A stretch of 63,093 bases of DNA, the filler included, from Octopus bimaculoides (taxonomy: Eukaryota), in NCBI RefSeq assembly GCF_001194135.2. It is 3 parts of 2 records of this genome, joined end to end, with 100 filler letters (N's around TTAATTAATTAA, not from the genome) between each part and the next. Parts side by side here need not be neighbours in the genome. Positions count along the whole stretch, not along the records: positions 26,330 to 54,139 come from NC_068990.1; 2 more parts are not named here. One strand, written 5' to 3'. The position numbers and the translations under genes were made by a program. The notes beneath the pieces are model-generated. The model was not told where the DNA came from. It made no database searches and worked only from the letters and a program-made list of their open reading frames with translations. Below are positions 26,230 to 52,913 of this stretch, piece by piece. How positions within the stretch are numbered: the first letter of the stretch is position 1; each line of letters opens with the position of its first letter.

Positions 26230-26330
26230 NNNNNNNNNNNNNNNNNNNNNNNNNNNNNNNNNNNNNNNNNNNNTTAATTAATTAANNNNNNNNNNNNNNN
26301 NNNNNNNNNNNNNNNNNNNNNNNNNNNNNC
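26230..26330. other. Artificial scaffold-join spacer (N44-TTAATTAATTAA-N45)
   Basis: A 12-mer giving stops in all six frames sits inside an N run; the same construct recurs at 54140-54239. Confidence 0.9.
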
Positions 26331-26332
26331 CC

Positions 26333-26947
26333 TCAGAAAAAGCAGAATCTGAAAAGTCCAAATCTCCTGTGACATCAGAACCTACTAAAACACCTGTATC
26401 TCCTGCCGCTTCAGAAAAAGCAGAATCTGAAAAGTCTAAATCCCCTGTAACCTCAGAACCAGGAAAGTCTCCTGTACCCTCAGAGAAAGCAGAATCTGAG
26501 AAATCACAATCTCCTGTGACCTCAGAACCTGCTAAGTCCCCTGTATCCTTGGCCCCTTCAGACAAAGCGGAATCAGAAAAGTCAAAATCCCCCGTTACCT
26601 CAGAACCTGCAAAATCCCCAAAGTCCCCTATCCCCCCAGAAAAAGCAGAATCTGAAAAATCAAAGTCACCTGTAACGTCAGAAACTGCGAAGACCCCTGT
26701 ATCTCCTGCCCCTTCAGACAAAGCAGAATCTGAAAAGTCAAAATCTCCTGTCACCTCAGAACCTGCAAAATCCCCACAATCCCCTGTACCCTCAGAAAAA
26801 GCAGAATCTGTAAAGTCAAAATCTCCAGTTCAGTCACCAGCCGCAAAATCGCCTTCATCACATGTGCCCTCAGAAAATGAAGTTTTAGAAAAGTCAAAAT
26901 CATCAGTCTCTTCAGAATCTTCTAAATCCTTCAAAGCCTCTTCACAC
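26333..26947 (+). repeat. Coding tandem repeat, 78-bp / 26-aa unit (SEKAESEKSKSPVTSEPAKSPVSPAP)
   Basis: Units start at 26333, 26411, 26480 (preceded by a 69-bp unit), 26558, 26636, 26714 and 26792, with a degenerate unit at 26870. Confidence 0.95.
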
Positions 26948-29140
26948 ACAGTGGAGACAGAGTCAATGAAATCGAAACAAAGGCTTTCGCCTGAACCCTC
27001 TGAAAAATCAGAATCTGAAACCCTTAAATCATCTGTGATAGCTACGTCTCCCCACTCCCCTGTTAAATCTGACTCAGAACATTTGTCTCCTGTATTGTCT
27101 GAACAATGTATAACCGATAAATCGGATCAATCTCTTTCACCTGTGGCCTCTGAAAAACACAAATCTTCAATTACTTCTGAATCTTTAAAGTCCTCTGTGA
27201 TATCTGAGAAATCCAAGTCTGTACCAACTGCTCCCTCTGACTCAGTGTTACCCACTTCTCCCTCAGAAAAAGCTAAATCCACTGTGATAACCAAACCTGC
27301 TAAATCACCTTCTAGCCCTGAAAAAGTTATTTCGGATAAAATACAGTCATCTAAGAAAGCAACATCACCTATTCAATCTGAGGATGCAGACTATCTGAAA
27401 GACAAGTCCTTTGTAAAATCTGAACCAGTTATCTCCCCAAATATTTTGGAAAATTCGCAAAAGGTAAAGTCACCCATTAATTCTGCAAAATCTCCTGTAC
27501 TTTCAGTAAGGTATTCTTCTCCATCCCAACCAGTTTTATCTCCTGTATATTTGTCTGAATCTCTAGTAGATTTACTGCAGGAAAAGTCTACAAATGTAAG
27601 CTTACCTGCATCTGGGAGATTTACATCTACTTTATCTGAAAGTCATTCGTCTGTTGAGGCAGGAGATCAAATTAAATACCAATCACCAGCTTCTGCCGAT
27701 TCTCTCAAATCTTCTGTAGAAGATGAGGAATACATTAAAACTGCAACTTCATTAGTTCATGAAAAGTTATCTCATGATAAACCCTATACGTCACTAATAT
27801 CTGACAAAGATGCCTCCCCTATGTCTTATAGTAACGCTGAATCCTTGAAAGTTACCTCGTTTACTACTTCAGGGAAGAAAGTGTTTCCAGTCACGTCTAG
27901 TCAATCACAATACGTAACAACTAGTTCATCTGTAGTTTCAATATTAAATAGGCCTGCTGATTCATCTGATAAAGCCAACATCTTAAAACTTTCACCCTCC
28001 GCATCCACTGAATATATTCCATCTTTTAACTCAACGAATAAAACTGAACTTAAAACCTCAAGTGATAATATAATTTCCCGATCCACTGTAACAACTGGCA
28101 ATGTTTCAGATCGGATCACCTTTAACATTGAATCGAATCAGGGTAGTACATATGATAATTCTCAATACAATAAATACCAGTTACGATCTGGGTCTACTGA
28201 AGTCTCGAAATTGAATGATTCTATGAAAGTTTCATCCATTATTATACCTGACAAGCACGAGACTGAACATTCTACTTCAGTGTTAGTTTTAGAGACCGCA
28301 AGTTGCACAGTACCATTAGAAACTGGTGAGCCTTTGCTGTCTCATGTCTATTCTGAGACAGTTAAGTCCCCTTTGTTACAGCGTTCTTTTCATTCTTCAG
28401 ATTTAGAAACTTTCAAGGATACTGACACTTTTTTACAAACCAGAACAGTAGTCCATGATAAAGGTTTACTTCCCAGTAGTTCTGTAGTAGCTAGCTTTCC
28501 ATCGTGGGTGCAAAAAGAAAATGGCCAACCAGAAACATCTACATCACAAATGTTTCCCTATAAGTTGACATCTTCTTCAACCCCAGGAATTAATCAGTTA
28601 AAAATGGGCTTTGAAACTGAACACATGTATTCTGTATCTGAATCGAAATCAGCGAAAGATACAGTAAAGGAAATTAATACTTTGCTCAAATCGTCTGCTC
28701 CAGAAAGCCATTTTATAAAGCAGAGCGATGATAGCGTAAGCGAAATAGTGTATAAGACATTCAGCGAAACCTCGGCTACAGATGAGGCTGATAATTCATA
28801 TGCTGAGAGTCAACAGAATGGTTATGATTGGGGAGGAGAAAAGCGAGTATACAAAGCTGAAAGTGAGGCGGTGAGAATGATTAAAGATCCCCAAAAGGAA
28901 ATTACAATACAGCTCAAAACTACATCTAAGCATTTTAGAAGTGGCATGGATGGTATGGCTGAGTCGATGAAAACTGCAGAAACCGCTGAAGTCAGGAAAG
29001 CAGAGATGAAAAGGCCATCGGAGAATTTCACCGATGCGAGTTCAAATGGGGTGGGTGGTACGTTGAAACTGTTGGACATGTATCCTGCTTTCGATGTTTT
29101 TAATAAAAAAGATACCACAGATTTTGGTTTGCATGTCTAA
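26333..29140 (+). CDS. NF220: Giant terminal exon encoding a KSP-repeat neurofilament tail (NF220 / NF-H-like isoform), 5'-truncated by gap
   Basis: Open from the gap edge to TAA at 29138-29140 (935 codons). S/E/K/P-rich with about 16 KSP motifs. On the same strand, 5 kb upstream of the NF60/NF70-like exons. Squid NF220 is a KSP-tail splice form of the same gene. Confidence 0.8.
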   Translation, partial: SEKAESEKSKSPVTSEPTKTPVSPAASEKAESEKSKSPVTSEPGKSPVPSEKAESEKSQSPVTSEPAKSPVSLAPSDKAESEKSKSPVTSEPAKSPKSPIPPEKAESEKSKSPVTSETAKTPVSPAPSDKAESEKSKSPVTSEPAKSPQSPVPSEKAESVKSKSPVQSPAAKSPSSHVPSENEVLEKSKSSVSSESSKSFKASSHTVETESMKSKQRLSPEPSEKSESETLKSSVIATSPHSPVKSDSEHLSPVLSEQCITDKSDQSLSPVASEKHKSSITSESLKSSVISEKSKSVPTAPSDSVLPTSPSEKAKSTVITKPAKSPSSPEKVISDKIQSSKKATSPIQSEDADYLKDKSFVKSEPVISPNILENSQKVKSPINSAKSPVLSVRYSSPSQPVLSPVYLSESLVDLLQEKSTNVSLPASGRFTSTLSESHSSVEAGDQIKYQSPASADSLKSSVEDEEYIKTATSLVHEKLSHDKPYTSLISDKDASPMSYSNAESLKVTSFTTSGKKVFPVTSSQSQYVTTSSSVVSILNRPADSSDKANILKLSPSASTEYIPSFNSTNKTELKTSSDNIISRSTVTTGNVSDRITFNIESNQGSTYDNSQYNKYQLRSGSTEVSKLNDSMKVSSIIIPDKHETEHSTSVLVLETASCTVPLETGEPLLSHVYSETVKSPLLQRSFHSSDLETFKDTDTFLQTRTVVHDKGLLPSSSVVASFPSWVQKENGQPETSTSQMFPYKLTSSSTPGINQLKMGFETEHMYSVSESKSAKDTVKEINTLLKSSAPESHFIKQSDDSVSEIVYKTFSETSATDEADNSYAESQQNGYDWGGEKRVYKAESEAVRMIKDPQKEITIQLKTTSKHFRSGMDGMAESMKTAETAEVRKAEMKRPSENFTDASSNGVGGTLKLLDMYPAFDVFNKKDTTDFGLHV

Positions 29141-29231
29141 GATTTTTTTATGTTTTGCCTGGCTCTTGCACCCCTTAGATATTAGTAGTCAAGCTATCCG
29201 ATTGGTTTCTCAATTTTAATTNNNNNNNNNN

Positions 29232-29270
<39 letters not shown>

Positions 29271-29366
29271 AGGTACGCATACAAATATTTACATTGAAAA
29301 CACGACTGTGTTCTAGTTCTCTCTCTTTTATAGGTGATCCACGTTGTAGAACATACACTAGTCATA

Positions 29367-29596
29367 AATAAAAACAAACTGTCTGATATTACGTAAATCT
29401 ATAAATCAGTACACTATATTTCAAATTGTGGCGGTAAAGTGTATTCCAATCACATTAGTTCTGTCTACCTTTAAGAGGCAGTAACATACAGCCATATTAC
29501 CATTTCTCGAAAGAGAGTCTATGAAGATCTAGAAATGTTGATATTTGTGATTTAGAAATATTCCTGTAATAATAAATATTAGAAATAAATAATAAA
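29367..29596 (+). terminator. Candidate polyadenylation signals for the NF220-type isoform
   Basis: AATAAA at 29367, 29571, 29584 and 29591, with a U/GU-rich tract at ~29770-29880. Weak evidence in AT-rich DNA. Confidence 0.35.
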
Positions 29597-30371
29597 AGAA
29601 TATGGAAAAAAATGTTGGTAAAATAGATGAAACTACATCACAGTCATGTTTTCAATACATGTCTCATAAGAGAAGCTGTTTCCCATATATACATATATTG
29701 ATGTGAAACTTCTAAATTTAACGCAGTGGCAGTGTTTTGCTTGTTGCTAAAAAATATATTGTAGTATGTCATCGTGTTTCTTTTTTGTTTCTTTTTATTT
29801 CTCATTCTGTTTTTTTCTGTGCAACTTTTCAGTTGAAGTAGTGCTCTAGGTGTGTGTTTTTTTCTGTTGGGTTTTCGTGCTATTTCTGCTGAATTTAGTT
29901 TATCTACACGTAGTACGGTAGATGTTGGAATACGTGATTAAACAAGTTGAACATTAAACCCGGTTCTAAAACTACTTTCTTCCCTCATTTTGTTTTCTCG
30001 AAATAGAAAGAGTTAAAAACTAACCTCCATTCCCTAACCAATCCATTCATATCCTAATTCTTTCTCTTTTTAATTAATATCTTATTTCTAAGACTCCATT
30101 TCCTTGCTTTTCATCGTTCAGTTCTTCTGTCTCGTCCTGGTTCTTTCCTTCCATCGTAACCCTTTCTTAAAATCCCTTATTTTTTCATTAAACAATGTTG
30201 TAGATTTTAAATGGGTTTTTTGCTTAAGTTTCAACAATATTCGATGGGTTTCTTTCTATTTAAGTTCGAACAAATATAGTAGAATATTAGTTATATAAGA
30301 AGAAATAATCTTAGTGAAATGATAAAGCTGCTACCAAATTTTCTGGTTTTGTGCCCAAAATCCAAGTAACA

Positions 30372-30810
30372 AGGCAGCGAATCGGCAGAATTTTTGGCGC
30401 ATCTGATATAATGCTTAGCAGAATTTCTTCCAGGTATTTAAACTCTGAGTTCAAACCCCACCAAGTCCATTTTACCTTTTATCCCTTCAGGGTAAATAAA
30501 ATAAAGAACCAGCCAACAACTTGGTTCGGTGTCGACTATCTTTCTCCTATAAAATACTGCTGCCCTTGGGCTAAAATTTGAAACCATTATTATGTCTATC
30601 ATTAAGAAGGCAATGACCTGCATAATTGCTGACATGCCGGAGAAAATACTTAGTGGCATTCCATCTTTACGTTCTGAGTTCAAATGCTATCGATTCGAGG
30701 TGGAGATACGTACCAGTCAAGTACTGGGAGTCGATGTAATCGACTAGCACTCTCCCCACAAATTTCAGGCCTTGTGCCTATATTAGAAAGAATAATAATT
30801 ATTATTATTA
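30372..30810 (+). mobile_element. Two degenerate family A SINE copies
   Basis: 30372-30590 and 30630-30810 are each colinear with 290-512 (ctgagttcaaa...aatttcaggccttgtgcc). Confidence 0.7.
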
Positions 30811-32572
30811 AGAGTGTCGTACTTCAATTGGTAAGCTCATAGTGGAGACCTTCTGATTATACAACACTGAGAAGGTATGAATGCCACCACTTCCAAGAAA
30901 CTTTATCTTAATCACCCCAAGCCTCATTTATTTTAAGATAATATTTAATGTAGCCACAGTCTCTTTTATGACTGAGAAACACAAAAAGGTTATATAATGT
31001 GCTTATTATACAGACAAGCTCCCTCCAAGAAAACAAGTATAGTATTCAACAGTCATAATGAAAATATCACAAGATTTTGAACTTGAGTGTAGGAAAAAGG
31101 GATACTTGTTTCAAAATCGTACTTCTCCTTACATTAGAGAAGTACAATTATATGTTATCCAAAATTAGAAAAGAAAAATGCTGTTATATCTGACAATGAT
31201 GGGGTTAATCTTAGTTTAAATTTATTGGCAACTTTTAGAAATTGTTTAGGTTAAATTTTTGAAAAGTAAATTTTAAAATTAATTTGATATTCAGTGCATA
31301 TTCTATCTTTGTAAGATATATTAAGCTAAAGTCCTGAGACAGTTTTTACTTCCTATCTTAATTTATATTTCTTTTGGAAAATCACAGTTCCGATATCATT
31401 CCAAAGCGTCTTATATTTAAAACTAATAATAAAAATAGCCCGGACTCAATAAATCAAGTTGTATGACCTGGAAATAGGGAGTAGTGCCCATCACAAAATG
31501 AGAGTCTTCAGTGACGTAGGAGTTAAAACGTATCATTTATGAAGTTCATTGCAATCATATACAACAGACGTAGTGATGTCGGAAACATCTAAGTGATTAC
31601 AACGTTTAACAATATTTAATTCGGCACAATAGATTTCTGAGTAGAACTTGCGCTGGGGTTAAATTCCATCTCTCCAGTGTCAAAAAAAAAAAATACCCTC
31701 ACCGCAAAAATCTTCTATTAATTTTATTACAGAAAGTGTTAGACTAAATTACCATTCATTTGCTTAAAACATTTTACATCAAGAGTTTTAGTCGAGTTCG
31801 ACTTCGTATACTTTATATATATTATATTTTACATTTTCTGAGTTGATGATATAATTACAAGTCGAGTAAGTATTAGATCGACTAAACTGACTATCCTCCC
31901 ACCACCCACACAGAAAAAAATGAAAGCTTCCGTCTGTGTTATATATCAATATTTTAGGATAGTCTCGTTCAGTTATGCTATTCTTAAATAATAATGGATG
32001 GTATACATTGAAAGGAAATTTTTATTACACATGTTTCTTTACAAAGAAAGGAACAAATATTTTCTCTTGAAATTTTATTCATGTAGTCTTATGATAGAAT
32101 AAAATTTCAGAGGATGGTAACCTCACATATTTGCTATAATAAGCAATGTATATCTCTATATATTACGAAATTTTACATTCCTTTATTTCAATAACATTTT
32201 AACATTTTAGATATTTCCGTTTGTGTTGTCTTACATTTCTATTATTACAGCTGACTCCAAAATATGTTTTAGTTAAGGGTTTTTTTTCAGGCCCTATGTC
32301 AGATAAATTAAGCTGATTAGATTATAGTTTCTGTATTAAGGACAGAATAAATCGACGTTACACAGACATAAGAATTTTCATATAAATATTTACGCATCTC
32401 AAGGCATCTTTATATATCCATAAGTTCATAAATACACTTGTACATTTTTAGCATCTGCATATACATCTACGTATAAAAAAAGCAAAGAATCATACATTAC
32501 TTACGTACATAAGTGGAACAATATAGCACAAATATATATACCTACATATATGAATATATATACCTACATATA

Positions 32573-32651
<79 letters not shown>

Positions 32652-32767
32652 ATATATGCATCTATATATATATATTTTATGTTACGTATATATATATGTA
32701 TATATATAGGCATATATGTACTTGTATGAATATTTGTGCATGTGTGTTTATGTGTGATTAAACATGT

Positions 32768-32802
<35 letters not shown>

Positions 32803-34147
32803 GTGTGTATATGTGATTGTGTATGTATGTATATTACTATATATTTATATATATATGTATATATAAATGTAAATAGATAATATATATACATACATATATG
32901 TTAATATATATGTGTATATATATATGTATTTATGTGTATATATATATATATATACATATCTATTTATAATTACAATGGGTCTGGGAAAAATATTTCAGCT
33001 TCAATAGATTTTGCGGAAATAGATGTTTATCAAGTAACAATGAATCCCAAATATTCTCAAAATAAAATTACCTCAAAATATATAGTATTATGTAATATTC
33101 AAAATAAAGTATTATATCCTGGAAGTTTTTGTTCATATAAATTCTCCAGGTTTCTTCATGTTTATCTACTGACCAGGAAATTTAATTGAAAGTCTCTGTC
33201 TATTCCTTTCAGATTTTCACTATTAGTATCTTCTAATATTATCAAGAAATCAATTTAAGAGGTCTGAATGACGTATGCTACTGTATTAAAACATTGGAAG
33301 CCGATAGAGTTAAAATGAGAAAATGAGTTGCTCAATAATAAAAAAAAAATTATATATATATATATATACTTTCATATTCAAACGAATGTATTAACGTAAT
33401 TTGAGATGTAACGTTATATTTTAATTATTTGTTATATAACATTGCTTTGTACTATATGTTGTAAGTTTAAGAATACTACCACAGTAAATTTGATACATAT
33501 TCAGTATTAATAAATATTAAATATACTAGATGCATGTTAACCTTGCTAAATATAGAAAAATGTAGTAATAGCAATATTTATAATTATATTAAATATAATA
33601 ATAATTTGCATTCTGTTCATATATTAGTAATATAAATATGTAACTTAATTCGAAAGTAGCCCTTTTATTATATATTTTAACATTATCAATAATATATTTA
33701 AGAGATAAATCTGGAAGATAAATGCTGTTTATTTAATATATATATATATATATATATANNNNNNNNNNNNNNNNNNNNNNNNNNNNNNNNNNNNNNNNNN
33801 NNNNNNNNNNNNNNNNNNNNNNNNNNNNNNNNNNNNNNNTATATATGAATTAAAAGTTGATTCTCCTCAAACTCAGTGTTTGCTAACCAACATTCAACTT
33901 GTGTGTTCCCGTCTTCCAACTACTACATATTTTGTTTTGTTTTTCGCAAAAATATATTCAATGTATAATTTTATTATTTTTCTTATACTTTGATGGCAAA
34001 AGAAAAATGACAGAAAGAGGTAAAGACATTTTGTACAATAGGAGAAATATAATAGAGGGCTTTTAATTGATTTTTAATAACATTAAGGTATTAAGCACTC
34101 TGAACAGGCTTTGGTACTGCTCTCATTGTTACCAAAATGCATCACAG

Positions 34148-34198
34148 GCAAGTTATGGAAGTCAACAGGAAAACAGTACGTTGTGAAATAGTAACCAG
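34148..34198 (+). CDS. Candidate 51-nt cassette exon of the neurofilament gene (R-QVMEVNRKTVRCEIVT)
   Basis: cacAG acceptor at 34146-47 and CAG|GTGAGA donor; phase 2-2, the same phase as the 34320 acceptor; no stop codon; 121-nt intron to the next exon. Confidence 0.4.
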
Positions 34199-34319
34199 GT
34201 GAGAAAGAGAACGAAAGAAAGGCCAACGCACTCGAAGATTTAAAAAAATGCAGTAGGTTTTTAAGAAGACATTTTTTTCTACCTTGTTTTTTCTTTTGGT
34301 TGTTTGTTTGTGCCAACAG

Positions 34320-34432
34320 AATTGGGATGAAGCAGATAGTGGAACAAGTTGTCGGATCCAGAACTAGTGAGGCAGAAGTGCTGTCTACCATGCTCACCAA
34401 GTCATCAGAAAGCAGTTATGAGGCTACCGGTG
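34320..34432 (+). CDS. NF70: Neurofilament post-rod exon shared by NF60/NF70-type isoforms ((R)IGMKQIVEQVVGSRTSEAEVLSTMLTKSSESSYEATG)
   Basis: U-rich tract plus caacAG acceptor; G|GTGCGT donor at 34433. The peptide matches recalled squid NF60/NF70 RVGMKQIVEQVVGARPNEAEVLSSILTRSEGGYEATG. Confidence 0.9.
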
Positions 34433-35289
34433 GTGCGTATTAGAGCCAAAGTGTACAAAACGACGTGGTGCTACTCATTTATAATTATATTAGTAAAACA
34501 GAAAAATTTCAGAAGTTTGTACATATGAATATATATATATAATATATATACAAACATATATATATATTATATATATAAATATGCATTCATTTATGCGTAA
34601 TATATATGGATGTACATATGTACTTTGTATATTACCTTATACTATTAAATGTACAATAGCCTGCATACACATATGGTGGGGGTGTATATAAACCTATATT
34701 TTGATAATCACATTCTTATTTATATGTACAGTTTACTTGTCACAAGAATCCTTCAAAATTAAGTTGTTCCAACGATTCAAATCACTCAGTTTATAGCTAA
34801 CACATAGTGCAGATATATTGTAGCTTGCAGATACAGACATGTTAACAAAGTGCTTTCTACAAAACATCTTTGTCTTCTTTCTAACAACTCCTTTCTCTCG
34901 CCACAATCTAACCAGTTTTTCTATTTTCCATACTATAAATCTGGTAATAAGCGTACCATTCTTCAAAACGGTACTTTACAATTTAGTAATTTTCTTTTCT
35001 TGTGTGTGTGCTATTTTCCTTTACTCAATTATTAATTTCTGCACAAACAAAGCTATCTTCTGTAGAATTTGCTTATCTCAAGTGGAAAAAGAAATACTAA
35101 AACACACTTGTTTAGTAATTTACATGAAATTAGATTTACCTTGCATGACGCTGCAATTGGACTAAATTCTTGCACGCACTTATCTGTCCGTTCTGTGATC
35201 CTTATATCCTTCTTCGTTAGTACTATATTTCCTTCTGCGACATGTTTCCTACTCCTCCCATCTGACAGGCCAAAAATTACATATTTCAG

Positions 35290-35363
35290 GCGTAACTTCT
35301 ACGACCACTCAAGAACGTCGGACAATGAGTGAAGAAAAAAAAGTCAGCTCTACCAAGGAATAG
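35290..35363 (+). CDS. NF60: NF60-type terminal exon (GVTSTTTQERRTMSEEKKVSSTKE*)
   Basis: tttcAG acceptor at 35288-89, phase 1 and compatible with the 34432 donor; TAG at 35361-63. Matches the recalled squid NF60 end GITTTTTTSSQERRSMSEEKKSMGSSD. Confidence 0.85.
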
Positions 35364-35893: not shown

Positions 35894-38800
35894 CATACAT
35901 ATGTATATATATAGCTATAGGTATATATAATGATATACTGTGGTACATATGCATTGAAACATGAAATATAAGATCAATTATCAAACTAATTTTTAAAATG
36001 TCGCGCTTTGTTAATTTAACAGTATATTATTTAAGTTATATTATATATATATAATGTCTACTTATAACCCCTCTATCGCATTCGTCCTATTATAATGTTA
36101 TATTTCCCTCTCTGGCAAAATTAAAGCTACAACAGAAATTACAGAAAACACTTTTTAATATAAAACTAAAAAAACAAAAACAAATATCACCTATTTTAAT
36201 TCCCCTTCTTTATATCTTAGATTAATTAAATTTTTTATTATAAGCTTAAGTTCAAAGGATATGAAAGAAAACTGCTTACTTAATCTTTTAAGAATTATAG
36301 AAAACCGGCACGTTGAGTGAGACTACTATGAATTCGTGCTGTATTCCCGAGCGGCAGCCTAAACTTCCCTGATCTTAAATTTTAATTATAAATTCATAAG
36401 AGATATTCATGTTTAGCTATTTCTAAATATACACTGCATAAATCGACCTCTCTCAATATGGTGAGTGAAAAAGGACTTGTAGATATTACCCTTTAAAAAG
36501 TCGAACCCTTGGCACAATTTTGTATTTAACTGAAAAGAGACTTGAACATAGAAAATGAAACTAAAGGCAAACTATTTAAGAACAAACAAAAACTTTTTCT
36601 AAATTTTCCCATTTGGTCAGAGCGTTTTTTTTTCCATACCTATAAAAAATGTAACAATGAAAACAACTGGAAATAATTTTTATTCGAAAAGTGCTTTTTA
36701 TAAAAGTAGTGAAATATAGGCGCTTCAAAAGCTCTTGATATATGTATAAATATATATATANNNNNNNNNNNNNNNNNNNNNNNNNNNNNNNNNNNNNNNN
36801 NNNNNNNNNNNNNNNNNNNNNNNNNNNNNNNNNNNNNNNNNNNNNNNNNNNNNNNNNNNNNNNNNNNNNNNNNNNNNNNNNNNNNNNNNNNNNNNNNNNN
36901 NNNNNNNNNNNNNNNNNNNNNNNNNNNNNNNNNNNNNNNNNNNNNNNNNNNNNNNNNNNNNNNNNNNNNNNNNNNNNNNNNNNNNNNNNNNNNNNNNNNN
37001 NNNNNNNNNNNNNNNNNNNNNNNNNNNNNNNNNNNNNNNNNNNNNNNNNNNNNNNNNNNNNNNNNNNNNNNNNNNNNNNNNNNNNNNNNNNNNNNNNNNN
37101 NNNNNNNNNNNNNNNNNNNNNNNNNNNNNNNNNNNNNNNNNNNNNNNNNNNNNNNNNNNNNNNNNNNNNNNNNNNNNNNNNNNNNNNNNNNNNNNNNNNN
37201 NNNNNNNNNNNNNNNNNNNNNNNNNNNNNNNNNNNNNNNNNNNNNNNNNNNNNNNNNNNNNNNNNNNNNNNNNNNNNNNNNNNNNNNNNNNNNNNNNNNN
37301 NNNNNNNNNNNNNNNNNNNNNNNNNNNNNNNNNNNNNNNNNNNNNNNNNNNNNNNNNNNNNNNNNNNNNNNNNNNNNNNNNNNNNNNNNNNNNNNNNNNN
37401 NNNNNNNNNNNNNNNNNNNNNNNNNNNNNNNNATATATAGTGTCTTCGTGCTTTCTTAAAGGTTACCTTTGATCTTTCACCGGCTGTGAATAGAAATTAT
37501 CAGGAACTCTGATGATTCCATAACGGAAGCATCGGTGCATTTGACACTCTTTTCTTAACTTTTATGCATGTCTCTTGTGAAACTCACGTCTATTAGTTCT
37601 TACGAATTCAACCTAACGAGTTATCTCTATCTGTCTCTCTCAATCTCTGTGTCTCTAACTCTATCTCTCACTCCAGAGCTTCGCTGCGGGGCATTGGAGC
37701 TAACTTGTAAGCAGCACTTGTTATAATAAAACAATTCACTGCAAAAATTCTGAATCACTAACTGTTGACTTCTCTGCCCCTCATTTCTCCTCGTCTGCTT
37801 TTAAAAAAAGATACTGGTATATTAACAAATAATATTTGCTTAACGATAATACATGACTAACTAAATCAACAATAGTTTCGTTCCTTTGCAGTTGATATCA
37901 GGCCTTTTAGGGAAAATTTACCTACAAGACCTGAGTATAATTAGGGACAATGTTAATAAAGATATCCCAACTTTCCACGTTTTGGTGATAACCGAAACGA
38001 ATTATTCACATAATTCAGATTCAATCATAGAAATTGCAGCTAATTCATCATATATTAAGAAAATGCTAAGTGTTGTAAAGATGTATTGTTCAAGCTAGAT
38101 CAATTTTAAAATGTGCTTTTACTAATTTTTTTTTTCTCGGAAAAGCATATTAATAGCTTTAGTGTTATATATCCTTTGAGAAATACAACATTTCTAAGGA
38201 TGCGAATTTAGTTTCAGTAAATATAGTTAAAATGTTCCCATGCTCTCATGAAGATATCAACAAGTCTCGTACCACTATTAGTCACTGTCTGCTTCAATGG
38301 GTATTTTTGACTAAAAATATTTATAGAAATCGTACTTTCATTTTCAACTATCAACGGTTTCTATTTAATATTAAAAAGTCAAAAGAATCAGCTCTCAATA
38401 TGCTGCTGGTTTTTTCAAACAAACAAGACGCAAAAAAAAGACAAATTCTGTTTTCAGATTTTCATTAAATTATGCAATTGTATTATTACAATTGCAATTG
38501 TATTATTATGCAATTTTATTATAACGAATGTTACTTTTTATGTATTATTCTTCTTTCTAGCCAAACATTAACGATGAATGCTTTTTATTTTCCAGCCAAG
38601 TTGAGAATTTTACTTTTACATCTCATTCATGTGCTTCTAACCTATAGTTCATTGATGTTTGCTGTATAGAGGAAATGATATGCTCTTCATATTTCTTTTT
38701 TAATAGTGATAAGTGATTATGTGATTACAAGTGGCGATTTTCTTTCAACCTCCCTTTTACAATATAACCATTGTTTACATAAGGATAAAGATAACTTATT

Positions 38801-39287: not shown

Positions 39288-40959
39288 CCCTTTTTCTATA
39301 GACACACACATGCATATACATACATACATACATACATACATACATACATACATGTATAGTGAAAGAAAACAACCATGAAAGTGTTATATCTTAGTCGTCT
39401 TAGTAGGATTCTATAGATATGTAAGTACCAGTTTCAATGTAAACCGTAGATCCGATCCGATCCGACTCAGCTAGTTCTAGGTGCGGCGTAGGTATAAAAA
39501 AGAACTTAAGTGGGGGTTTAAAATTCACAAGCGCTATTTCGGTAAAAATATTTTAAAAGTATTCGTAGATTACATCTTAGCATATAATCCAGTATCAGAT
39601 ACACACCTGTTTAAATTAAATGAAGATGGCGGAATATATGCTCTGATGCAATTTAGGAATACATAAAGTTCTACCGTTACAGCCGTCGTAAATGCCAAAC
39701 CCCATTTGTTCTTTTATAATATATATATATGTGTGTATACATACATATATATATATAGATAATCAAATCTATAATTACAGGTTAATCGGCAGAAGGAAAG
39801 AGTCATTCTTATTAGTGCAAACACGTGAAAACTCATTTATTATACGTCGCTTGTATCACTCAAACCCGTGGTCGATACATATTGAAGTGTTGAGTGATGT
39901 TTCACGCTAAGTAAAAAATGTTGCTTTCACCCGTTTTAAAGATACATACATTATTGATAGTTAACGGTGTACTTTTTAATTATGCTTCTTGCAGTAGAGA
40001 ATGATATTTATGCTCTATGTATCTGTGCAGTCGTGATTATGACAATTGAGAATATCATCCACTCGCTCAATGCGGCTGTGGTAACCACACATGAATATTT
40101 ATCTCTACGGTTGATATTCTTAAAGGCTGGCACAGTAATTAAACTGTCAAAATATTGTCAAGTATCTCTTGCGTAAATTAGTGGAATTCGTTACTATTCC
40201 ACCATACATCGTTTGAATTATTGATTGACCAAGTTCATCGAGTCTCTTGATGCTCATTGACTTGTGACTGGTTGTTTTTACCTGAGCTCTTCACTCTTGT
40301 TGACTAAAACATTTGAAGTTCTCGAGTCCAATCTACTTAAGTACAAATATATAGGCAGTGCAGATGTCGTTATTTAGTACTAGCTCAGATCCGAATGAAC
40401 AGAATTATGATCAGATGCATTCCAGCCGTAATCACCAGATCTAGTATATATCTAAAACTACAGTATCAAATCTGCTTTTCTTTCACAAGACAGTGAGATT
40501 CAATTTCAACGATAATTAGGCACTACTTCTAACAGCACAAATTACCACGTGATATTGCCCTTATAGGCTCGTTTAGTTGTACAGCACATCGTCTTCGTAA
40601 GCCAAAGTATCAACTTACTAATGATTAATGTTCCGTTACTTAGTTCCAACACTCCAATAAGAGGGACTCGGAGTGAATTATAATAATTATATAAACCGTA
40701 TCAAGTTTTTATTGCTTACCATGAGATCAGGTGTCATTCACACATCTGCTATATTCTGGTTAGGGTTTCAAACAAAGGAATTCTGTACAAAATATTTTAT
40801 CAACAAGTAAGGATGCTGTTTTGAATTAGAAAGTATTTGAGGTCAAACTTTTTAACATAACTTAATTCTGCTATAAGACCGGACAAATATATTTCGAAAC
40901 ATATAGAATGTTAAATATTTTTATCAATATTTTTATCCCAGCAAATAAGTTATTGCCTT

Positions 40960-41050
40960 ATGTATGTATGTATGGATGGATGGATGGATGGATGGATGGA
41001 TGGATGGATGGATGGATAGATGGTTGGATGGATGTATGGATGGGTGGATG
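40960..41050. repeat. (TATG)n-(GATG)n microsatellite
   Basis: Directly visible. Confidence 0.9.
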
Positions 41051-43614
41051 TGTCAGTGTATATCAGCGTGCATTTACGTTTGTGTATGTATGCATGTATA
41101 TACATGTCTCTTGCGTAAATTAGTAGAATTCGTTAATATTGCACCATACATCGTTTGAATTATCGTTTGACGAAGTATATGTATATATGATATATTATAT
41201 CATATTATATATAAATCATAGTATAATATAATATTTCATGTATATATCATTTCTTTAGTATCAAGCAATAACTGCAAAATTTGAAGATCTCTTGTTATCT
41301 TCCAAATGAAGTAGACACAAAAGTATTGTTGCTTATGTAGCACTTGAAATTGACTTAAATTGCCTCGCTTTGGTCCTCAACTCCTTGTGGAGTTGTAGAT
41401 GAACTGACGTGACGTAGGTGTCTGATTTTGACATTTTCAGAGCTGACGGAGTTCAACACTTGTCACTTATGACCAACGCAAAATATCTTTTGAAAAGTGA
41501 CAGATATAAAATATACAACGTGTTGTATCAACCAGCGTGTCGGAATGGTTGTTTATTTTCCAACCCCCAAAGTATGAAAGTCGAATTTGATTGGGCCTGG
41601 CAATCTTTCAAACGTTCTAGGAACTTGGCCTCACATTTTGTATTAGGCTGAAAAAGAAAGATGACTCAGAAAGTCTTCGTCAGAGTTAAATGTACTAAAT
41701 CTTTTGAAACTATACAAAATAAACTGCGTAAATATCGAAAGAACACCTGTGCAATAAATGAAAGTAGTTATAAGTAAATGGAGCTAATTTGCTATACCAG
41801 CTAAATACATGTACTTAATAAAATCATGGCAATAGACATAGTTTTCATGCACACTTCCTTCAGAAACGTGCTGAAGTCAAGAAATATTAATGGACTTGGG
41901 AACATGTTTCAAATTAAATGTTAGCTAATAATAAAGAAACATTTAAAGAGCAACGCTAGAAGAAAAACATCCCCGTCAGTGAGAAGCATGTTTAAAATGT
42001 GTTTCACAATCAACCTTGTTCCCTAAATATGAAAATACATGAATGTCCATTGACGTATACATGCTTATACATTTATGTACACATGTATATAAATTTATCA
42101 AAAAAGGATCAGTTTATATAGATATATTGATAAACGGCAATGCCCTTTTTATCGGGAATTTAGAATTATATAAACACAGCACAGCCATTCAAAAGATGCA
42201 GATTATGCATGAGTGAGACCCATGGAAAAGAATAAGTGAAGAAAGTGAAAGAGGGAAAAGTGTGAGATTGGAAAACCCTAGCAACATATAACAGTCGTAA
42301 TAATTATGTTGTATTTAAATAACATAAACAGTGAATCTGTATGAAAACTAAGCTAGAAAACATATCGGAGAAATGCTATTTCTCTGTCTTCTTGCCTTCG
42401 AATTTCTTTTATATCAGTAGTACATGCTGTCACAAAAAGTGTTCTTTCGGTATTTTTTCTCTCCGAAACATCAGTGAATTGGGAGATGAGAATTAACGAA
42501 TTTATTCATAGAACTATAATTCAACGCAGTCTTAAAGAAAATAAGAAACCGATGTTATGCTATCATTGCAAAAAAACATAGGTTTCGATTTGGTATATCC
42601 AGCTGGCTTTTAAGTCTGATATTATGATTTAACTTCAATATCATTCGATTTTCATTTGAAAGCATAAAGAAAACCACTCATATTTATACATTTATTTATA
42701 TCTGTNNNNNNNNNNNNNNNNNNNNNNNNNNNNNNNNNNNNNNNNNNNNNNNNNNNNNNNNNNNNNNNNNNNNNNNNNNNNNNNNNNNNNNNNNNNNNNN
42801 NNNNNNNNNNNNNNNNNNNNNNNNNNNNNNNNNNNNNNNNNNNNNNNNNNNNNNNNNNNNNNNNNNNNNNNNNNNNNNNNNNNNNNNNNNNNNNNNNNNN
42901 NNNNNNNNNNNNNNNNNNNNNNNNNNNNNNNNNNNNNNNNNNNNNNNNNNNNNNNNNNNNNNNNNNNNNNNNNNNNNNNNNNNNNNNNNNNNNNNNNNNN
43001 NNNNNNNNNNNNNNNNNNNNNNNNNNNNNNNNNNNNNNNNNNNNNNNNNNNNNNNNNTATATATATGAAATTTTACATCTATCGCATTGTATGGCAGTTA
43101 AGACCGGCTCCACTTGAGAAAGGGAGATAATTTCAAGAATCCAGAATTCCCCAAAGCTAACAAGCATTAAAGTTAAGGACACGTTTCTTTTTCGGGAGAA
43201 AAGAGGACATTCATGAACTCGCCAACCTGTGTTCTGCCTCAATAGTCGTCACTCAGACTTATTTCTCTTAACTCATGTTCCTTCAAATAATGTAAATTAC
43301 TTAAGCCATACATGTGTTCTACTCTGCATATATATCAATGTCCCTTGGCTGCTAAAGATTATGTTTGACAACTGTCGTGTTGATGAATTGTATTGAACCA
43401 GAAACACTTGTCCCTTAAGGTTCAAACAAAAATACTGTCCCTTTCACAAATAACAAATCAGATTTGAAGAATTTTTGATTCCCGTGATTATCTCCCTTTC
43501 TGATACGGAGCTGTTTTTAATTGCCTTGCGGTAATGAAGACACATCCTCTACAGTGAGAGATGAATTTTATAAATCAAAAATTTATGCTGTATAATATTT
43601 CATATACCTGTAGT

Positions 43615-44880: not shown

Positions 44881-47676
44881 ACATATATTCTGAATTGTCT
44901 TGACAATTATAATTGTTTATCACTCTCATCTAACAGAATAATTGGCTAACAAATATTAATCAAAGTCTTGGTTTCTAGATATATGCTTTTCAGATAGTAA
45001 TATCTCGATTTGTAACTATAAAATTTTATACAGAATACCTGGCATAAAATGTTTTATGAATTCCCTTAAAGTTATTATGAATGAGACTTATATGTTGGTT
45101 ACTGTTTTAGTGTCAATAAATGAAACCAATCATGTGATTATAAATAATTCTGAAAAGAATAGTTTTCAGTCAATATATACTTTTTCCTTCGATAAAGTTT
45201 AATCTGCTCATTAGACATTTTAATTCAGTCGTATCTTGGTTTAATTTTAAAATATTTTATTCATTGTTTTAATCAAACTTGGAATAGAACTGATAATAAT
45301 TCAAATGATAAGTGAAGTAGTATATTTTGTCGACCTTCTTATTCATACAAGTTACAGAATTGTATTTTTTAGTTTGTCATTTTCTAGATTACTTGCAATT
45401 AGCTTCAGAAGAGGAAAATAGTTACATATTAAGTTTAATATAGCGGAGGAGATTTTTTAAAACAATTAAAATTTATGGTAGCGTATGTCCTGATAGAAAT
45501 TATGTACTTATTAAACCATTCAGAATATAACTTCAAGCACACAATGTTTTTGATAAAACTTGAAATTATAGATTGTATATTTATCTAAATTAAATTGTTT
45601 GGTTTGAGTTTAGCTTTTTGTTACGCTGCAAATATTATATATTGGCTATTATTTTTGAGGTGGCTCCTTAGATCAGAGCTACTCTATCAAGTTATCAATA
45701 ATTTAGTTGCATCGTTGAAGATACTCACAATGTATAATACAAAAGTATTATAGACTACAATATGTGAAAAAGAAGCTTATAATTGCAGACATGTCTGTGG
45801 AATGATATTCTTGGAAATTTGACACTAATGTTATTTATTAAACATTGTGCATCCTACTAAAACTTATGTAGTTTCTAGCGATTGTGTATAGAGACCCCAT
45901 TAATCATATTGTTGGATAGCATTCAGAGCAGCCATTGCAGCAGAAAGCCAGGTAAGATGTTTGTCGCTCTTTCTCCACATGTTGCACTTAATATCCAGTG
46001 TTCCTTGATCTATTTGTTGTGTTATTCTATATGCATAGTAGTTATTGTTTTCTAAATGGTAAAATTTTCTATAAATATATTTCGATATTGCAATAAATGT
46101 AATTATGATTTGTTTTCTCTAATCAGCAGAGAAATATTTGGATGGTGTCGTTTTGCTTTGTTCGTGAATGCTTATATTAATTTTTGTTTTAATTTGATTG
46201 CAACTTAATTATTTTATGCTTACGCCTATTTATTCGTACAGAATATTCAAAACTTATAAAGTAAAAAAAATAATATCACCTAAGGCCTTCAAGTAGAAAA
46301 GCATCTCTCTAATAGTTTAACTAAACAGATATTAAAAGTAACTATTTTTAGCTTGTTTTAATTCTATGTCAGATGCTGTGAAATTAAGGCCTCGATATCG
46401 ATTAAATTATGTGGAGATTAAAATCTAAATACAAATATTCAATAGTTAATAATTACTCTCTCTCTCTCTCTCTCTCTCTCTCNNNNNNNNNNNNNNNNNN
46501 NNNNNNNNNNNNNNNNNNNNNNNNNNNNNNNNNNNNNNNNNNNNNNNNNNNNNNNNNNNNNNNNNNNNNNNNNNNNNNNNNNNNNNNNNNNNNNNNNNNN
46601 NNNNNNNNNNNNNNNNNNNNNNNNNNNNNNNNNNNNNNNNNNNNNNNNNNNNNNNNNNNNNNNNNNNNNNNNNNNNNNNNNNNNNNNNNNNNNNNNNNNN
46701 NNNNNNNNNNNNNNNNNNNNNNNNNNNNNNNNNNNNNNNNNNNNNNNNNNNNNNNNNNNNNNNNNNNNNNNNNNNNNNNNNNNNNNNATATATATATATA
46801 TATATAAGCATATATATATACACATATATACATATATATATAAATATATATGTATATATATATGGATAGATAGATAGATAGATAGATTTTATCACGCGCA
46901 TTAGAAATCATTGAATAGAGGAATTAATTATGAAAAAAAGCACAATTTATCTTTTAAATATAAAGTATTATGCTTTCAGTCAGGAAAAGCAAACACATAA
47001 TCATTTGTAATTACACTAAAGTTTTCGTAAGCCTTGTTTTGTGATGTAAAAAAAATGACTGAAATTTGAAATTAATAATCTAAGAATTCAGTCGTCTTTA
47101 ATAAGTAGTTTATGTAACTCACATGAAGGCTCCTTTGGCCATTACACTTCCATTCAAAATCTAAAAATTATGCATTTGAGTGGAACACTTATATGTTCTG
47201 AATATTATTTATTAATTTTCATATATTTCCATACACGAAGCCTTTTAAGTGTATGTGCCTAAATGAATTTGAATGACACATAGATGTATATAATTACTAA
47301 ATCTAGCAAACATTATGTGCTAGTTAGCGACAGCTCGTATTTTGCTGAGATCCCCATACGTTTATCCCACTATTGTACGAGTAAAGCAAATAGAGTAAGA
47401 TATGAGAAACAGACTACACGAAACAGAGTTCAAAATATAATATCCGATGTTTACTCATCGTTATAAAATAGAAGAAAGCTACCTGATTACTTAACCGGAT
47501 ACATACAGTACCACAAATCGTACACCATCGTCTTTGGAAACAAAAGTGAGGTAGATATTGTAATCTGAAATTCACGTCTTTATGATCGTGAATTTACAAG
47601 ATTCTCACAATGATGAGTCGACTTGTAGGAGTTCGTCAGTATCTTTCTTATTCTGATAAATCGTTATTGTTATTAT

Positions 47677-47800: not shown

Positions 47801-47927
47801 ATAGACTATCAAATAAACAACTCACCGCATAACTGCGTCATGATGATCTTGAATTTACATGATTCTCTCATAATGATGAGTTGATTTACAGGAATTCATC
47901 AGTATCTTTCTTATTCTGATAAATTGC

Positions 47928-47963
<36 letters not shown>

Positions 47964-50900
47964 GCAGTGTCTATACCGTGGACACTCCTTACAAGGAAAA
48001 TAGAAGAATGAAATGGGCCACTGAAAGCATATTTAGTGTGGTTTCAACATTAATTGTATTCTAAATAACACTCAAAATTAATACTCTGAGCGTTGAGAAG
48101 CATGTATACAATCGATGCAATTACTGCTTCAAGTGTTGTAGATATAAATAAACAATATTAAGCAAAATATCATAAAAGCAATCTCTCTGTGAAATCTATC
48201 AGAAATATACATTGGCATTCCTACTATTTGATTGCAATATGATAATTCGAACAGTAATATTTTTCATATGACATTTTAAAATATTTCAATGTCAGTTATA
48301 ATTCCAGCACAAAACTCAAATACATAAATGTGTATCAGTAGCAACTTTAGTATATATGGCTTAAACTTATTTTCTTATTAAAATGTACATAAAACCCATT
48401 ACTTAATATTTTCTCGGGAACATTTGGTGAAAATATACAAGCCTCTGAGTTATGTTGATAGCTTCTTTAAATAATGTAAACTGAGGCGCAGGAGCAATAT
48501 AAATATCTTCAGATAGATGCATTCATATACTACCTCTATTTTAAAGGTATTTCGTATCATGTATTGCTACGATCTTTGATAACGATTGCACTTCTTAGGG
48601 ATTAATTCATTCAAGCGTATTATGCAGAGAATGTTTCGGAAAGACACATGTCTCCGTTTCTCAAACCTGAAGATGGTTTGATGTTGTCTGTTTCAAACAC
48701 ATTGGAAAAGTTATATTGAAAGTTACCTTTCCTATGTTAAGGAAGCGAACTCTCAAGACTCTCAAATTGCTATATAAAAAAGTATGAATACCTGTTTTCA
48801 TGCAAAAAGATATTGCATGGTTATGAGGGCTAACCTCTCTGAATATACTTCATAAACGCTACCTCGAAAGTTACGGGAAAACTACCTTTTAGATTATCAT
48901 AATTATCTTGCTTCTCAGTAATTATCAATATATTTTCAATAGAACACGTATGAGTCTGAGATGTGCTCTCCTGCACTAATGTAATAGAACAGTGTTTTCT
49001 CTATCTTGAGAACTTGACATCAGCAAATCTATGGTTTGAGGCTAGCTGTAAACATTCTTGATATATGCGTATGTAGTTCTATCTTTCGATTCTAACGGAA
49101 GGATTTTCGAAGTTGACACCTTATTATTGTATTAATACTATACATGGGTATTCTGGATATTCAGCTATTCCTTCTACATTCTTGTGTCTCTATATAATTT
49201 GCTGATAACCACACATAATCTGATGCAAATGTTACCAACTTCATTTCATTCTAATCTTAGTCTCTTTGTTAAGCGAACTAAACCTTTCGTGCATATTTTC
49301 TGTAAATTCAGACTCTGAAAATAGCCTTTTATCGGAACGTGGCATCTTCATCTACTAATATAACGATACAAAGATTTTATCAACCACCTCGTGTATAAAA
49401 CACATTACAGTTGCTAGAAGTACTATGGGCCGCGATTTATGATAGCCTCCAATTAGGGACTTAACATATTAACATAGCTAAATTTTCGTCCTCAAATTTA
49501 CTTTATACATCAAGGTTAGAAAATATTTCAGAACCAACCATTTACTTTTTAAAAAACAAATGTGATCCAGAATAAAGCACTGTGCAATATCTGTTACATT
49601 GCTGCAAGAACATACTCAAATACCCTACGTCAATTTAATAAATTTAATAAACCGCAATGTTTATATATCGTCATTTAATAAACGGCAATGTTTATATATC
49701 GTCATTTACCACAACCTAAAACAGACTCAGCTATTTTAATTTAGCAAACAACTTATTGTTACTGGCCTCTTGATACAAAGGCATAACATTTTATCATCTC
49801 TACAATATCTTATACCTAGCCACAACACTGCACACGATTTCTCGTGTTTTCCCTGTAGATACAACTCAAACTGAACGCCTACCGAATGGATCACACAATT
49901 TAGAGTATCTAAGTACTTGAAGATATCATTCATTCCTTATGTCTCGTTGCTAAATTTAATGAAATATCTCAACTTCTGAAATGTATTGACATATCGACAT
50001 AAACGATGATGATTATAGAGGCAAGAATTAAAATCGCTGAAATACACAAGTGTTTTAATTACTTATAAAATTTTATTTCTGTGTGTATAAATTCATTCTA
50101 ATAAAAGAACATTAAATTAAATATCATATAATATTACAGACGGTAGACATATATAGTTATTAAAATATCTCCTGAATTAATATTAATTTAAAACAATGTT
50201 GCGCACGTGCAATGCTATATATGTTGTGTACTTCGTTGATTAGTGTTTTTTTCTCTGAAATTTTTATCATTTTAAATTCCTAATTTTGTAGCAAGCTTGA
50301 ATTCATTTATTCTGTGTTTTCTGGATTTTTTTATTTTTTTCGTTTCACTTACTTCAGAGAAATTTTTCCTTTCCTTTAAAATTACTGCTGACTGGTTGAT
50401 TATTTTCATATTTTTCAATCCATCTATTTGTCCACATTCTGATATTCTGATTTGATCATTTCCTACAACTTCGTTAAGAAGTCATCTTGGNNNNNNNNNN
50501 NNNNNNNNNNNNNNNNNNNNNNNNNNNNNNNNNNNNNNNNNNNNNNNNNNNNNNNNNNNNNNNNNNNNNNNNNNNNNNNNNNNNNNNNNNNNNNNNNNNN
50601 NNNNNNNNNNNNNNNNNNNNNNNNNNNNNNNNNNNNNNNNNNNNNNNNNNNNNNNNNNNNNNNNNNNNNNNNNNNNNNNNNNNNNNNNNNNNNNNNNNNN
50701 NNNNNNNNNNNNNNNNNNNNNNNNNNNNNNNNNNNNNNNNNNNNNNNNNNNNNNNNNNNNNNNNNNNNNNNNNNNNNNNNNNNNNNNNNNNNNNNNNNNN
50801 NNNNNNNNNNNNNNNNNNNNNNNNNNNNNNNNNNNNNNNNNNNNNNNNNNNNNNNNNNNNNNNNNNNNNNNNNNNNNNNNNNNNNNNNNNNNNNNNNNNN

Positions 50901-52913
50901 NNNNNNNNNNNNNNNNNNNNNNNNNNNNNNNNNNNNNNNNNNNNNNNNNNNNNNNNNNNNNNNNNNNNNNNNNNNNNNNNNNNNNNNNNNNNNNATATCA
51001 CATGATTTACTTTCTTTATTCTAACAATATGCTGCATTTTCATTGTAAGTCTGTTAATCACAATACCACTCCATATATCTTTAAACACAATTAATTGTTC
51101 CCCACCTTGTGAGTATCGCCCTGTATGTTTTTATTTCGTTATTTCTTACCTTCCAAAATGTGCCTATGCAAAATCATGCAAAAGTTTACATTTTGGTATC
51201 ACATTAAAAGCAAGAAATTAGATGATTTCGTCTTGAGTGGACAATGATTGGCCAAATCTGAAGCCTAATAAATGGTCAAATATGAGGCCCACGTGTGGGT
51301 ACAACGATCAGGCAGGTATGAGGAATGTAGGCCTTTTAAAGGGACATGAGCACATGTTTTCGAACATAGTGACTATATTCAAATAACTATGATGCTCGAG
51401 TTCTTATTCCGATTTAATTTATATTCACATTCATCACAATGAGGAAAGAGTCTCGACGATTAGCTCCGGTTCGTGAGCCGTTTTCAGTTTCATTATTCGT
51501 TAATATGATTTTATTCTAGCATTTATATTTAAACTGAAATATTAGAGCAGTTTGAATACTGTCACTTAACTTTGCAATATAGGTTCATGCATCCACTAAG
51601 CATATCATTTCAGGTCTTCAGTATAGGCTTATCATTTTCCATTCAAGAAGATGTTATAATTTAACTCGCTAGGTTTAAAGTGATGCTAAAATGAAACTAT
51701 TGCTTAATTTAAAAAGATTAGTTGCCGGGTATCCCCACACTATATGTAACATTTTGCATCAGTTCAGTACAACATTATCATGTCTTATTTTATATATAGC
51801 TCGTTCAACTGTTTGCTTCGGGGAAATAATATGCGTTCTCGCATTGCAATTATTATTATTTAAACCATTATTGCTTTCATTGGTTCACAAGCCCAAAAGT
51901 TTAGTTCTTGCTAATTTATGTAGCTTTAATTTATTCCACACTGCCACCATATATTTGCACACACATTCACACATACAATAATATGATCAAATAAATGCAC
52001 AAAAACACGTGTATTTATATATATATATATATATATATATGCATTATATATATATACAGGCATATACATGCATACATACATACATGTGTATATATATATA
52101 AACACTACTCTAAATACCAGAGGCTGTTTTGTTCGTTAAATGTTTTGCAGCAGTAGTTAAAATTATACTGCTATCCCTTCATCCATACACATACATATAA
52201 ATACATTCAGACCAGACACATAAATTTATATATACATATACTGTATACATATATATACACATACATATGCATTTTCATCTGTCATGAAACCATTCACATG
52301 AAATCGTATTTTTTATATCAAAACCATTTTCACATTGCTTTTCCTGTTTCACACACATTCATTGCAGTCTCGATTAAGTTGCAAATGATCGTGATTACAC
52401 TTTTTTTTTTAATTAATATTTGTTTTAATTCTCAAAGAATATATTTCTCTATCACAACTGTATCTCAAATTTCAGTGGCTTTCTTTCCCATAAGAGATCA
52501 AAATACAAAATCCTTTTTCATGATTTTTACTTCAACCTTTTCAAAGCATATCAGAGCTGTGTCAATATTATCACACACTCCCCTGAAAAAAAATGCCGTA
52601 GTTTGGATGTAAAAATTCCATACTCAATCCTTCCATTGACATATTCTCTTCTACTTTTCTTAAAGTTGAAATTTCATGTGATTATCACAAAAATTCATAT
52701 TATTTTTCACCATAGAAAACTCATAAAGAAGGATATAATGATATAAGTGATCAATGAACAGATGAGTGATGGTAAACGTTAGGAGATGATATTCAAAGGG
52801 CTACTATAGCATTGACTATGCCCACAGATTAAGAAAACATTTAACTCAGTCAACGCGCACACACGTAAACAGACACACACACACTAACATTTTAATACAT
52901 ACAAATACATATT

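Follow-up and report, generated by a model that had tools for sequence, protein, structure and literature searches.

A KSP-rich open reading frame as candidate alternative last exon in a lamin-like neurofilament gene of Octopus bimaculoides

The closest described systems to the gene analyzed here are the neurofilaments of squid. In Doryteuthis/Loligo pealei, the subunits NF60, NF70 and NF220 are reported to be products of a single lamin-like gene that differ through alternative RNA processing, and they reportedly share a common head and rod, with NF220 carrying a tail of Lys-Ser-Pro (KSP) motifs. Vertebrate neurofilaments are made from separate genes and have a short coil 1B, and the Helix aspersa proteins IF-A and IF-B are molluscan cytoplasmic intermediate filaments (IFs) with alternative tails. 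Here, we analyzed positions 26330-54139 (NC_068990.1, Octopus bimaculoides, assembly GCF_001194135.2) of a window of 63,093 nucleotides, the window being the whole stretch of DNA, in which three parts of two records of this genome are joined. Judged from its sequence, this piece represents the 3' part of a gene for a cytoplasmic IF protein of the lamin-like type, a neurofilament gene of octopus. It starts inside a giant open reading frame (ORF) containing KSP repeats, which is followed by two short tail exons that we term A and B (Table 1). A sequence-only reading of the window had proposed the order giant KSP exon, exon A, exon B, and had suggested that heavy and light subunits are produced from this gene through alternative last exons. 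The order was confirmed in its coordinates, and we consider it likely, with a probability of about 0.7, that the giant block is the alternative last exon of a heavy subunit.

Exons A and B are 100% identical in tblastn searches to the C-terminus of the O. vulgaris protein CAI9729291.1 (P0001, 503 residues, 'neurofilament medium polypeptide-like'), which was found by a search with exon A. With exon junctions given as slashes, this protein reads ...LLEGEETR/IGMKQ...EATG/GVTSTTTQERRTMSEEKKVSSTKE followed by the stop, i.e., it ends in ...AAYRKLLEGEETR-IGMKQIVEQVVGSRTSEAEVLSTMLTKSSESSYEATG-GVTSTTTQERRTMSEEKKVSSTKE. A Filament rod is located at residues 90-442 (Pfam PF00038, E 3.8e-54), and its end coincides exactly with the exon A junction. 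In the Pfam alignment, a rod stretch of 353 residues covers 312 positions of the Filament profile, a difference that would fit an insertion of ~40 residues, such as the 42 extra residues of a long, lamin-type coil 1B. The acceptor of exon A is pyrimidine-rich and strong (...ttgtttgtttgtgccaacag/A, that is ...gtgccaacag/A), its donor reads ACCGGTG/gtgcgt, and exon B follows the acceptor catatttcag/GC. These findings uphold the earlier placement of both exons in a lamin-like neurofilament gene, and the splice phases proposed for them, 2 and then 1, proved correct.

No rod exon was detected by tblastn between 26330 and 54139. As exons A and B are on the plus strand, the rod exons must be located upstream of 26330, and the giant block consequently lies in the intron between the rod and exon A, in sense orientation. 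It is coding sequence rather than a product of chance, because its frame is open for 936 codons versus at most 151 codons for the longest other stop-free run in the six frames of the remaining 25 kb, the G+C content of which is mostly 13-34%. The visible product (100.7 kDa, isoelectric point 5.9) contains 16 KSP and 35 Ser-Pro (SP) motifs and consists of 21.6% Ser, 10.6% Lys, 9.0% Glu and 7.9% Pro. The first 543 nucleotides form a tandem array, in which one unit comprises 23 and the last unit 28 residues. Differences between the repeat units are mostly synonymous, with a mean proportion of 0.51 for synonymous (pS) and 0.10 for nonsynonymous (pN) differences and a pN/pS of 0.20. Selection has therefore acted on the peptide in the frame of the giant ORF, and the repeat units are under purifying selection. 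A folded domain was not found in the giant ORF, as judged from the Pfam families scoring above their cut-offs; a match to DUF7251 (17.5 bits, cut-off 27) was rejected as sub-threshold. For the C-terminal 280 residues, AlphaFold prediction gave a predicted local distance difference test score of 32.9, which fits disorder and is weak evidence, as the model was produced without an alignment. The encoded tail is probably disordered and serine-rich.

The giant ORF has its own stop codon and downstream polyadenylation (poly(A)) candidates, as the sequence-only reading had claimed. An additional AATAAA at 29102-29107 is located within the ORF, 31 nt ahead of the stop, and its use would place cleavage at about the stop codon. 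Inside the giant ORF, a simple log-odds scan revealed no phase-2 donor usable for splicing to exon A, the top site scoring about -0.2 versus 3.7 for the exon A donor, and the ORF thus fits a terminal exon. Together, the position in the rod-to-exon A intron, the strand, the tandem KSP repeats, the stop, the AATAAA downstream of it and the precedent of squid NF220 lead us to favor a terminal exon of a heavy subunit.

In the scheme that we propose, the head and rod exons would lie upstream of 26330, and the last rod exon would end two bases into an Arg codon (...GEETR), its phase-2 donor pairing with several downstream acceptors. A first route would use the giant-exon acceptor, located 5' of the piece, and transcription would end at a poly(A) site past 29140. 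The resulting product, a rod with a SEKSKSP/AKSP tail of at least 936 residues, would comprise at least 1378 residues and have a mass of at least 152 kDa before phosphorylation; it would correspond to squid NF220 and be functionally analogous to the side-arms of vertebrate NF-H/NF-M. In a second route, splicing to the acceptor at 34320 would include exon A, followed either by exon B at 35290 and its poly(A) site, yielding a 503-residue NF60-like subunit, or, with exon B being bypassed, by lamin-tail-domain (LTD) exons beyond 54139, yielding a 610-residue NF70-like subunit. A third route would connect the rod with exon B, bypassing exon A and changing the reading frame, and yield a 455-residue model. 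Exact matches to annotated O. vulgaris proteins show the second and the third route, and we infer the joining of the rod to the giant exon. Competition between the acceptor and poly(A) site of the giant exon and the acceptor of exon A may then set the ratio of heavy to light subunits.

Several observations weigh against assigning the giant block to a heavy neurofilament subunit. The squid scheme was derived from cDNAs, whereas the evidence for the octopus block is genomic order only, and the rod-to-KSP junction is outside the piece, with the acceptor and the phase of the giant exon falling beyond its edge at 26330. Within the visible part of the tail, KSP motifs cluster in the first ~180 residues, and the other ~750 residues are Ser/Thr-rich, non-repetitive and not KSP-rich. 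We found no homologue of the giant block in libraries of 5.8 billion protein clusters and 1.84 billion representatives, in which cephalopods are partially covered; the latter library was searched by exhaustive phmmer, and its sole match (P0006, 30% identity to the repeat region) looks like a bacterial repeat protein and was rejected as compositional. Homology of the giant tail to squid NF220 is thus far not demonstrated. The best 120 matches of a search with the rod were inspected for length and tails, and none of them is a rod-containing protein longer than 740 residues. Finally, this rod search returned a single protein cluster from O. vulgaris, and none of its five members contains the block. 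The absence of the block from the libraries is weak evidence, since their cephalopod coverage is thin: the rod search returned this one O. vulgaris cluster and one 84%-identical protein, read as decapod. Two other queries should be mentioned. A word-indexed search with the whole giant ORF yielded 8000 candidates, saturated by low-complexity words, none of which was significant, and a chimeric query combining the C-terminal 280 residues of the giant ORF with exon A produced matches via exon A only.

The giant ORF could alternatively be a separate gene of the same orientation, nested in the neurofilament intron, and its product would be a disordered, KSP/Ser-rich protein without any connection to the rod. 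Such an arrangement would agree with the location of the 5' end of the ORF outside the piece, with the lack of an annotated isoform linking the ORF to the rod, and with the lack of a homologue that ties it to any IF protein. However, the ORF is found on the same strand and directly after the rod, at the site of the alternative tails of mollusc IFs, its tandem KSP repeats are a hallmark of neurofilament side-arms, and squid NF220 is reported to be a rod with a KSP tail from the shared gene. We regard a nested gene as unlikely.

Less likely still is a partial use of the giant block, in which a donor at 28326 would join the KSP segment to an acceptor belonging either to exon B or to the lamin-tail exons, and the heavy isoform would not end at the TAA at 29138. 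This site (CTG/GTGAGC, phase 1) is the best donor-like site in the giant ORF and scores 6.1 versus 3.7 for the exon A donor; its phase is compatible with both types of acceptor, formally allowing for a KSP-plus-LTD isoform, and in a Patella isoform (P0023) the rod and the LTD are separated by an insert. Past 28326, however, 270 further codons are free of stops, which would be unexpected for an intron at ~36% G+C, and no protein with a junction of this type is present among the library matches. That the giant ORF is a relic or a rarely used pseudo-exon with lost expression, as its absence from the retrieved O. vulgaris isoforms and all library proteins might suggest, is very improbable in view of 936 stop-free codons in AT-rich DNA and of synonymous repeat differences that far exceed nonsynonymous ones. 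A terminal exon that encodes the tail of a heavy subunit thus remains our preferred reading of the giant block.

Table 1. Features of the analyzed piece, in positions of the window.
Feature	Position	Strand	Description
Giant ORF	26330-29140	+	936 codons plus TAA 29138-29140; 5' end cut by the edge of the piece; candidate alternative last exon, KSP-rich tail of a heavy subunit
Tandem repeat array	26330-26872	+	Seven ~78-nt (26-residue) SEKSKSP/AKSP units, consensus PSEKAESEKSKSPVTSEPAKSPVSPA; extends past the edge of the piece
Assembly gap	29222-29231		10 N; adjoins a (TA)20 run, 82 nt past the stop of the giant ORF
AATAAA	29367-29372	+	First downstream of the stop of the giant ORF, at 227 nt; consensus match only
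Further AATAAA	29571, 29584, 29591	+	Downstream of the stop of the giant ORF; consensus match only
Assembly gap	33759-33839		81 N; intronic, 480 nt 5' of exon A, flanked by (TA)n on both sides
Exon A, first canonical tail exon	34320-34432	+	(R)IGMKQIVEQVVGSRTSEAEVLSTMLTKSSESSYEATG(G); 113 nt; entered in phase 2, left in phase 1; 100% identical to O. vulgaris P0001 and P0003
Exon B, short terminal coding exon	35290-35363	+	(G)VTSTTTQERRTMSEEKKVSSTKE, then TAG 35361-35363; end of the 503-residue NF60-like isoform
TGA of a direct rod-to-exon B splice	35330-35332	+	Frame RNFYDHSRTSDNE, then stop; annotated isoform P0002, 455 residues
ATTAAA	35691-35696	+	First past the stop of exon B; candidate poly(A) signal of the short isoform; consensus match only

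The light ends of the gene could be followed in the O. vulgaris isoforms. A 610-residue protein (P0003, '[70] kDa neurofilament-like X2') consists of the rod, exon A and a 129-residue lamin-tail-like segment, in which PF00932 scores 26.7 bits (E 7.7e-6), below the cut-off of 34.3 bits; an Argonauta homologue (P0004) has a precomputed PF00932 match. Exon A is common to this NF70-like and the 503-residue NF60-like isoform, in line with its earlier description as a shared post-rod exon. Lamin-tail exons were not found by tblastn in 26330-54139. They are probably located beyond 54139, more than 18.8 kb downstream of exon B, a position in the assembly gaps being less likely. Because the 610-residue isoform joins exon A to lamin-tail exons beyond the piece, the gene has more than two alternative ends, with exon B as one alternative terminal exon. 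The proposed production of heavy and light subunits through alternative last exons thus stands for the light ends, which have exact protein matches, and its scheme of two ends is incomplete, as LTD exons and a direct rod-to-exon B connection add to them.

Two further O. vulgaris models bear on the post-rod junction. In CAI9729292.1 (P0002), exon A is skipped and the rod is joined to exon B (35290-35332), resulting in a frame-shifted tail of 13 residues, RNFYDHSRTSDNE, ahead of the stop. A 442-residue model (P0005) ends at the rod and would fit read-through of an AG/GTAA donor, this donor being outside the piece. Each of the two models could be either a real minor isoform or annotation noise. 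In Argonauta hians (locus L001), four LTD exons are clustered within 1.6 kb, and neither exon A, exon B nor a KSP block was found within 10 kb upstream of them. The Argonauta model GAB1599482.1 (128 residues; 9992-11611 of L001, BAAFZT010000007.1) begins with an internal Met and is restricted to the four lamin-tail exons, representing a truncated annotation of the A. hians neurofilament gene.

We compared the octopus locus to the described IF systems. Like squid NF60 and NF70, the octopus light isoforms carry either a short tail (503 residues in total) or an LTD tail (610 residues in total) on one head and rod. A KSP-repeat tail block in the same gene region is a further feature in common, and the 16 KSP motifs and seven tandem units of the giant ORF correspond to a tail of the NF220 type. 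An NF70 homologue (P0007), decapod-like, is 84% identical in head and rod and has the same exon A peptide as octopus. The squid studies, Szaro et al. 1991 (J Biol Chem 266:15035) and Way et al. 1992 (PNAS 89:6963), are cited in PMC4765724. In favor of a heavy subunit, an anti-NF200 antibody labels octopus nerve fibers (PMC5736919). Our literature searches returned nothing specific on the structure of cephalopod neurofilament genes.

In other molluscs (Haliotis, Patella, Mya and Mytilus), the NCBI models of IF genes include '60 kDa' and '70 kDa neurofilament protein-like' proteins, which are isoforms of one gene. The tails in Haliotis and Patella branch directly after ...LLEGEE(T/N)R, as at the end of the octopus rod, and the LTD-bearing mollusc isoforms share an exon A homologue, RVGL(K/R)QVVEQ.... 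In the form (N)R(V/I)GL(K/R)QVVEQ..., this homologue is present in the tails of many mollusc and other IF proteins returned by the rod search, and exon A is ancient. In the best 120 rod matches, the IF tails do not exceed 260 residues and lack tandem KSP repeats, so far leaving the octopus piece as the only place where a KSP block of ~0.9 thousand residues is seen. In Haliotis cracherodii, one isoform (P0008, '60 kDa NF-like X3') switches directly after ...LLEGEETR to an acidic tail with RSRSPEEE and DKSPGDKK. An SP-bearing alternative exon at the post-rod position may thus predate the cephalopods.

The tails of vertebrate NEFH and NEFM are, like the octopus tail, long, rich in Ser, Lys, Glu and Pro, with tandem KSP motifs and no folded domain. 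The octopus tail differs from them in belonging to a lamin-like protostome IF gene, where it would be chosen by alternative use of last exons. No Pfam match of the giant tail to the vertebrate NF-H repeat families was obtained. The resemblance to vertebrate NF-H side-arms is best read as convergent, given the lamin-like protostome character of the octopus gene and this negative result for the vertebrate tail repeats.

Neither of the two assembly gaps next to the tail exons (Table 1) touches coding sequence, and the reading frames are intact. As both gaps are non-coding, only the lengths of the 3' untranslated region and of the intron are uncertain. These two gaps adjoin (TA)n, and the translated flanks of most other gaps show microsatellites of the TA/TC type. 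In the regions concerned (29222-29271, 33737-33846, 36742-37440, 42706-43057, 46483-46787, 50491-50994 and 52985-53199), the gaps look like collapsed or unread simple repeats rather than missing unique sequence. A repeat scan of the piece returned mainly TA microsatellites and N runs. Scans for Rfam families and tRNAs were negative, and the ten longest intronic ORFs contain no Pfam family. Further downstream, a 70-nt direct repeat (40165-40234 and 41107-41176, 91% identical) is located before and at the 3' end of a minisatellite (40908-41158) of the (GGATGGAT) type, which reads GWMDGWMD in one frame; repeat and minisatellite may constitute a small repeat element. The copies of a 74-nt direct repeat (47603-47676 and 47866-47939, 86% identical) are 263 nt apart, in a large intron or intergenic DNA downstream of exon B.

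The principle of alternative tails on one rod has been apparent from squid cDNAs since 1991-92, and in this respect the gain is incremental. New are the order of the terminal exons in octopus, the apparent lack of a heavy isoform among the retrieved O. vulgaris models, and a tail that has no detectable relative. As none of the retrieved models is heavy, octopus gene models probably omit the heavy isoform. A broader proposal, which we offer tentatively and consider doubtful as a whole, is that octopods possess a heavy neurofilament subunit encoded with the use of a terminal exon that measures at least 2.8 kb and that the retrieved O. vulgaris isoforms lack; its tail would be without detectable relative in ~15 billion public proteins, so that KSP side-arms would either evolve very fast or have arisen independently within cephalopods. 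Owing to the position of this exon 5' of the ancient exon A, the heavy:light ratio would be set by one decision between splicing and polyadenylation in one intron. In vertebrates, side-arm content influences axon caliber, and three separate genes determine this content. In cephalopods, very large axon calibers are attained with a single lamin-like gene. With the order of terminal exons known (KSP, exon A, short terminal exon, distant lamin-tail exons), regulation of the subunit ratio would become directly testable by junction and 3'-end reads. If the proposal is true, the vertebrate three-gene system would have a compact and testable counterpart among invertebrates in the octopus gene.

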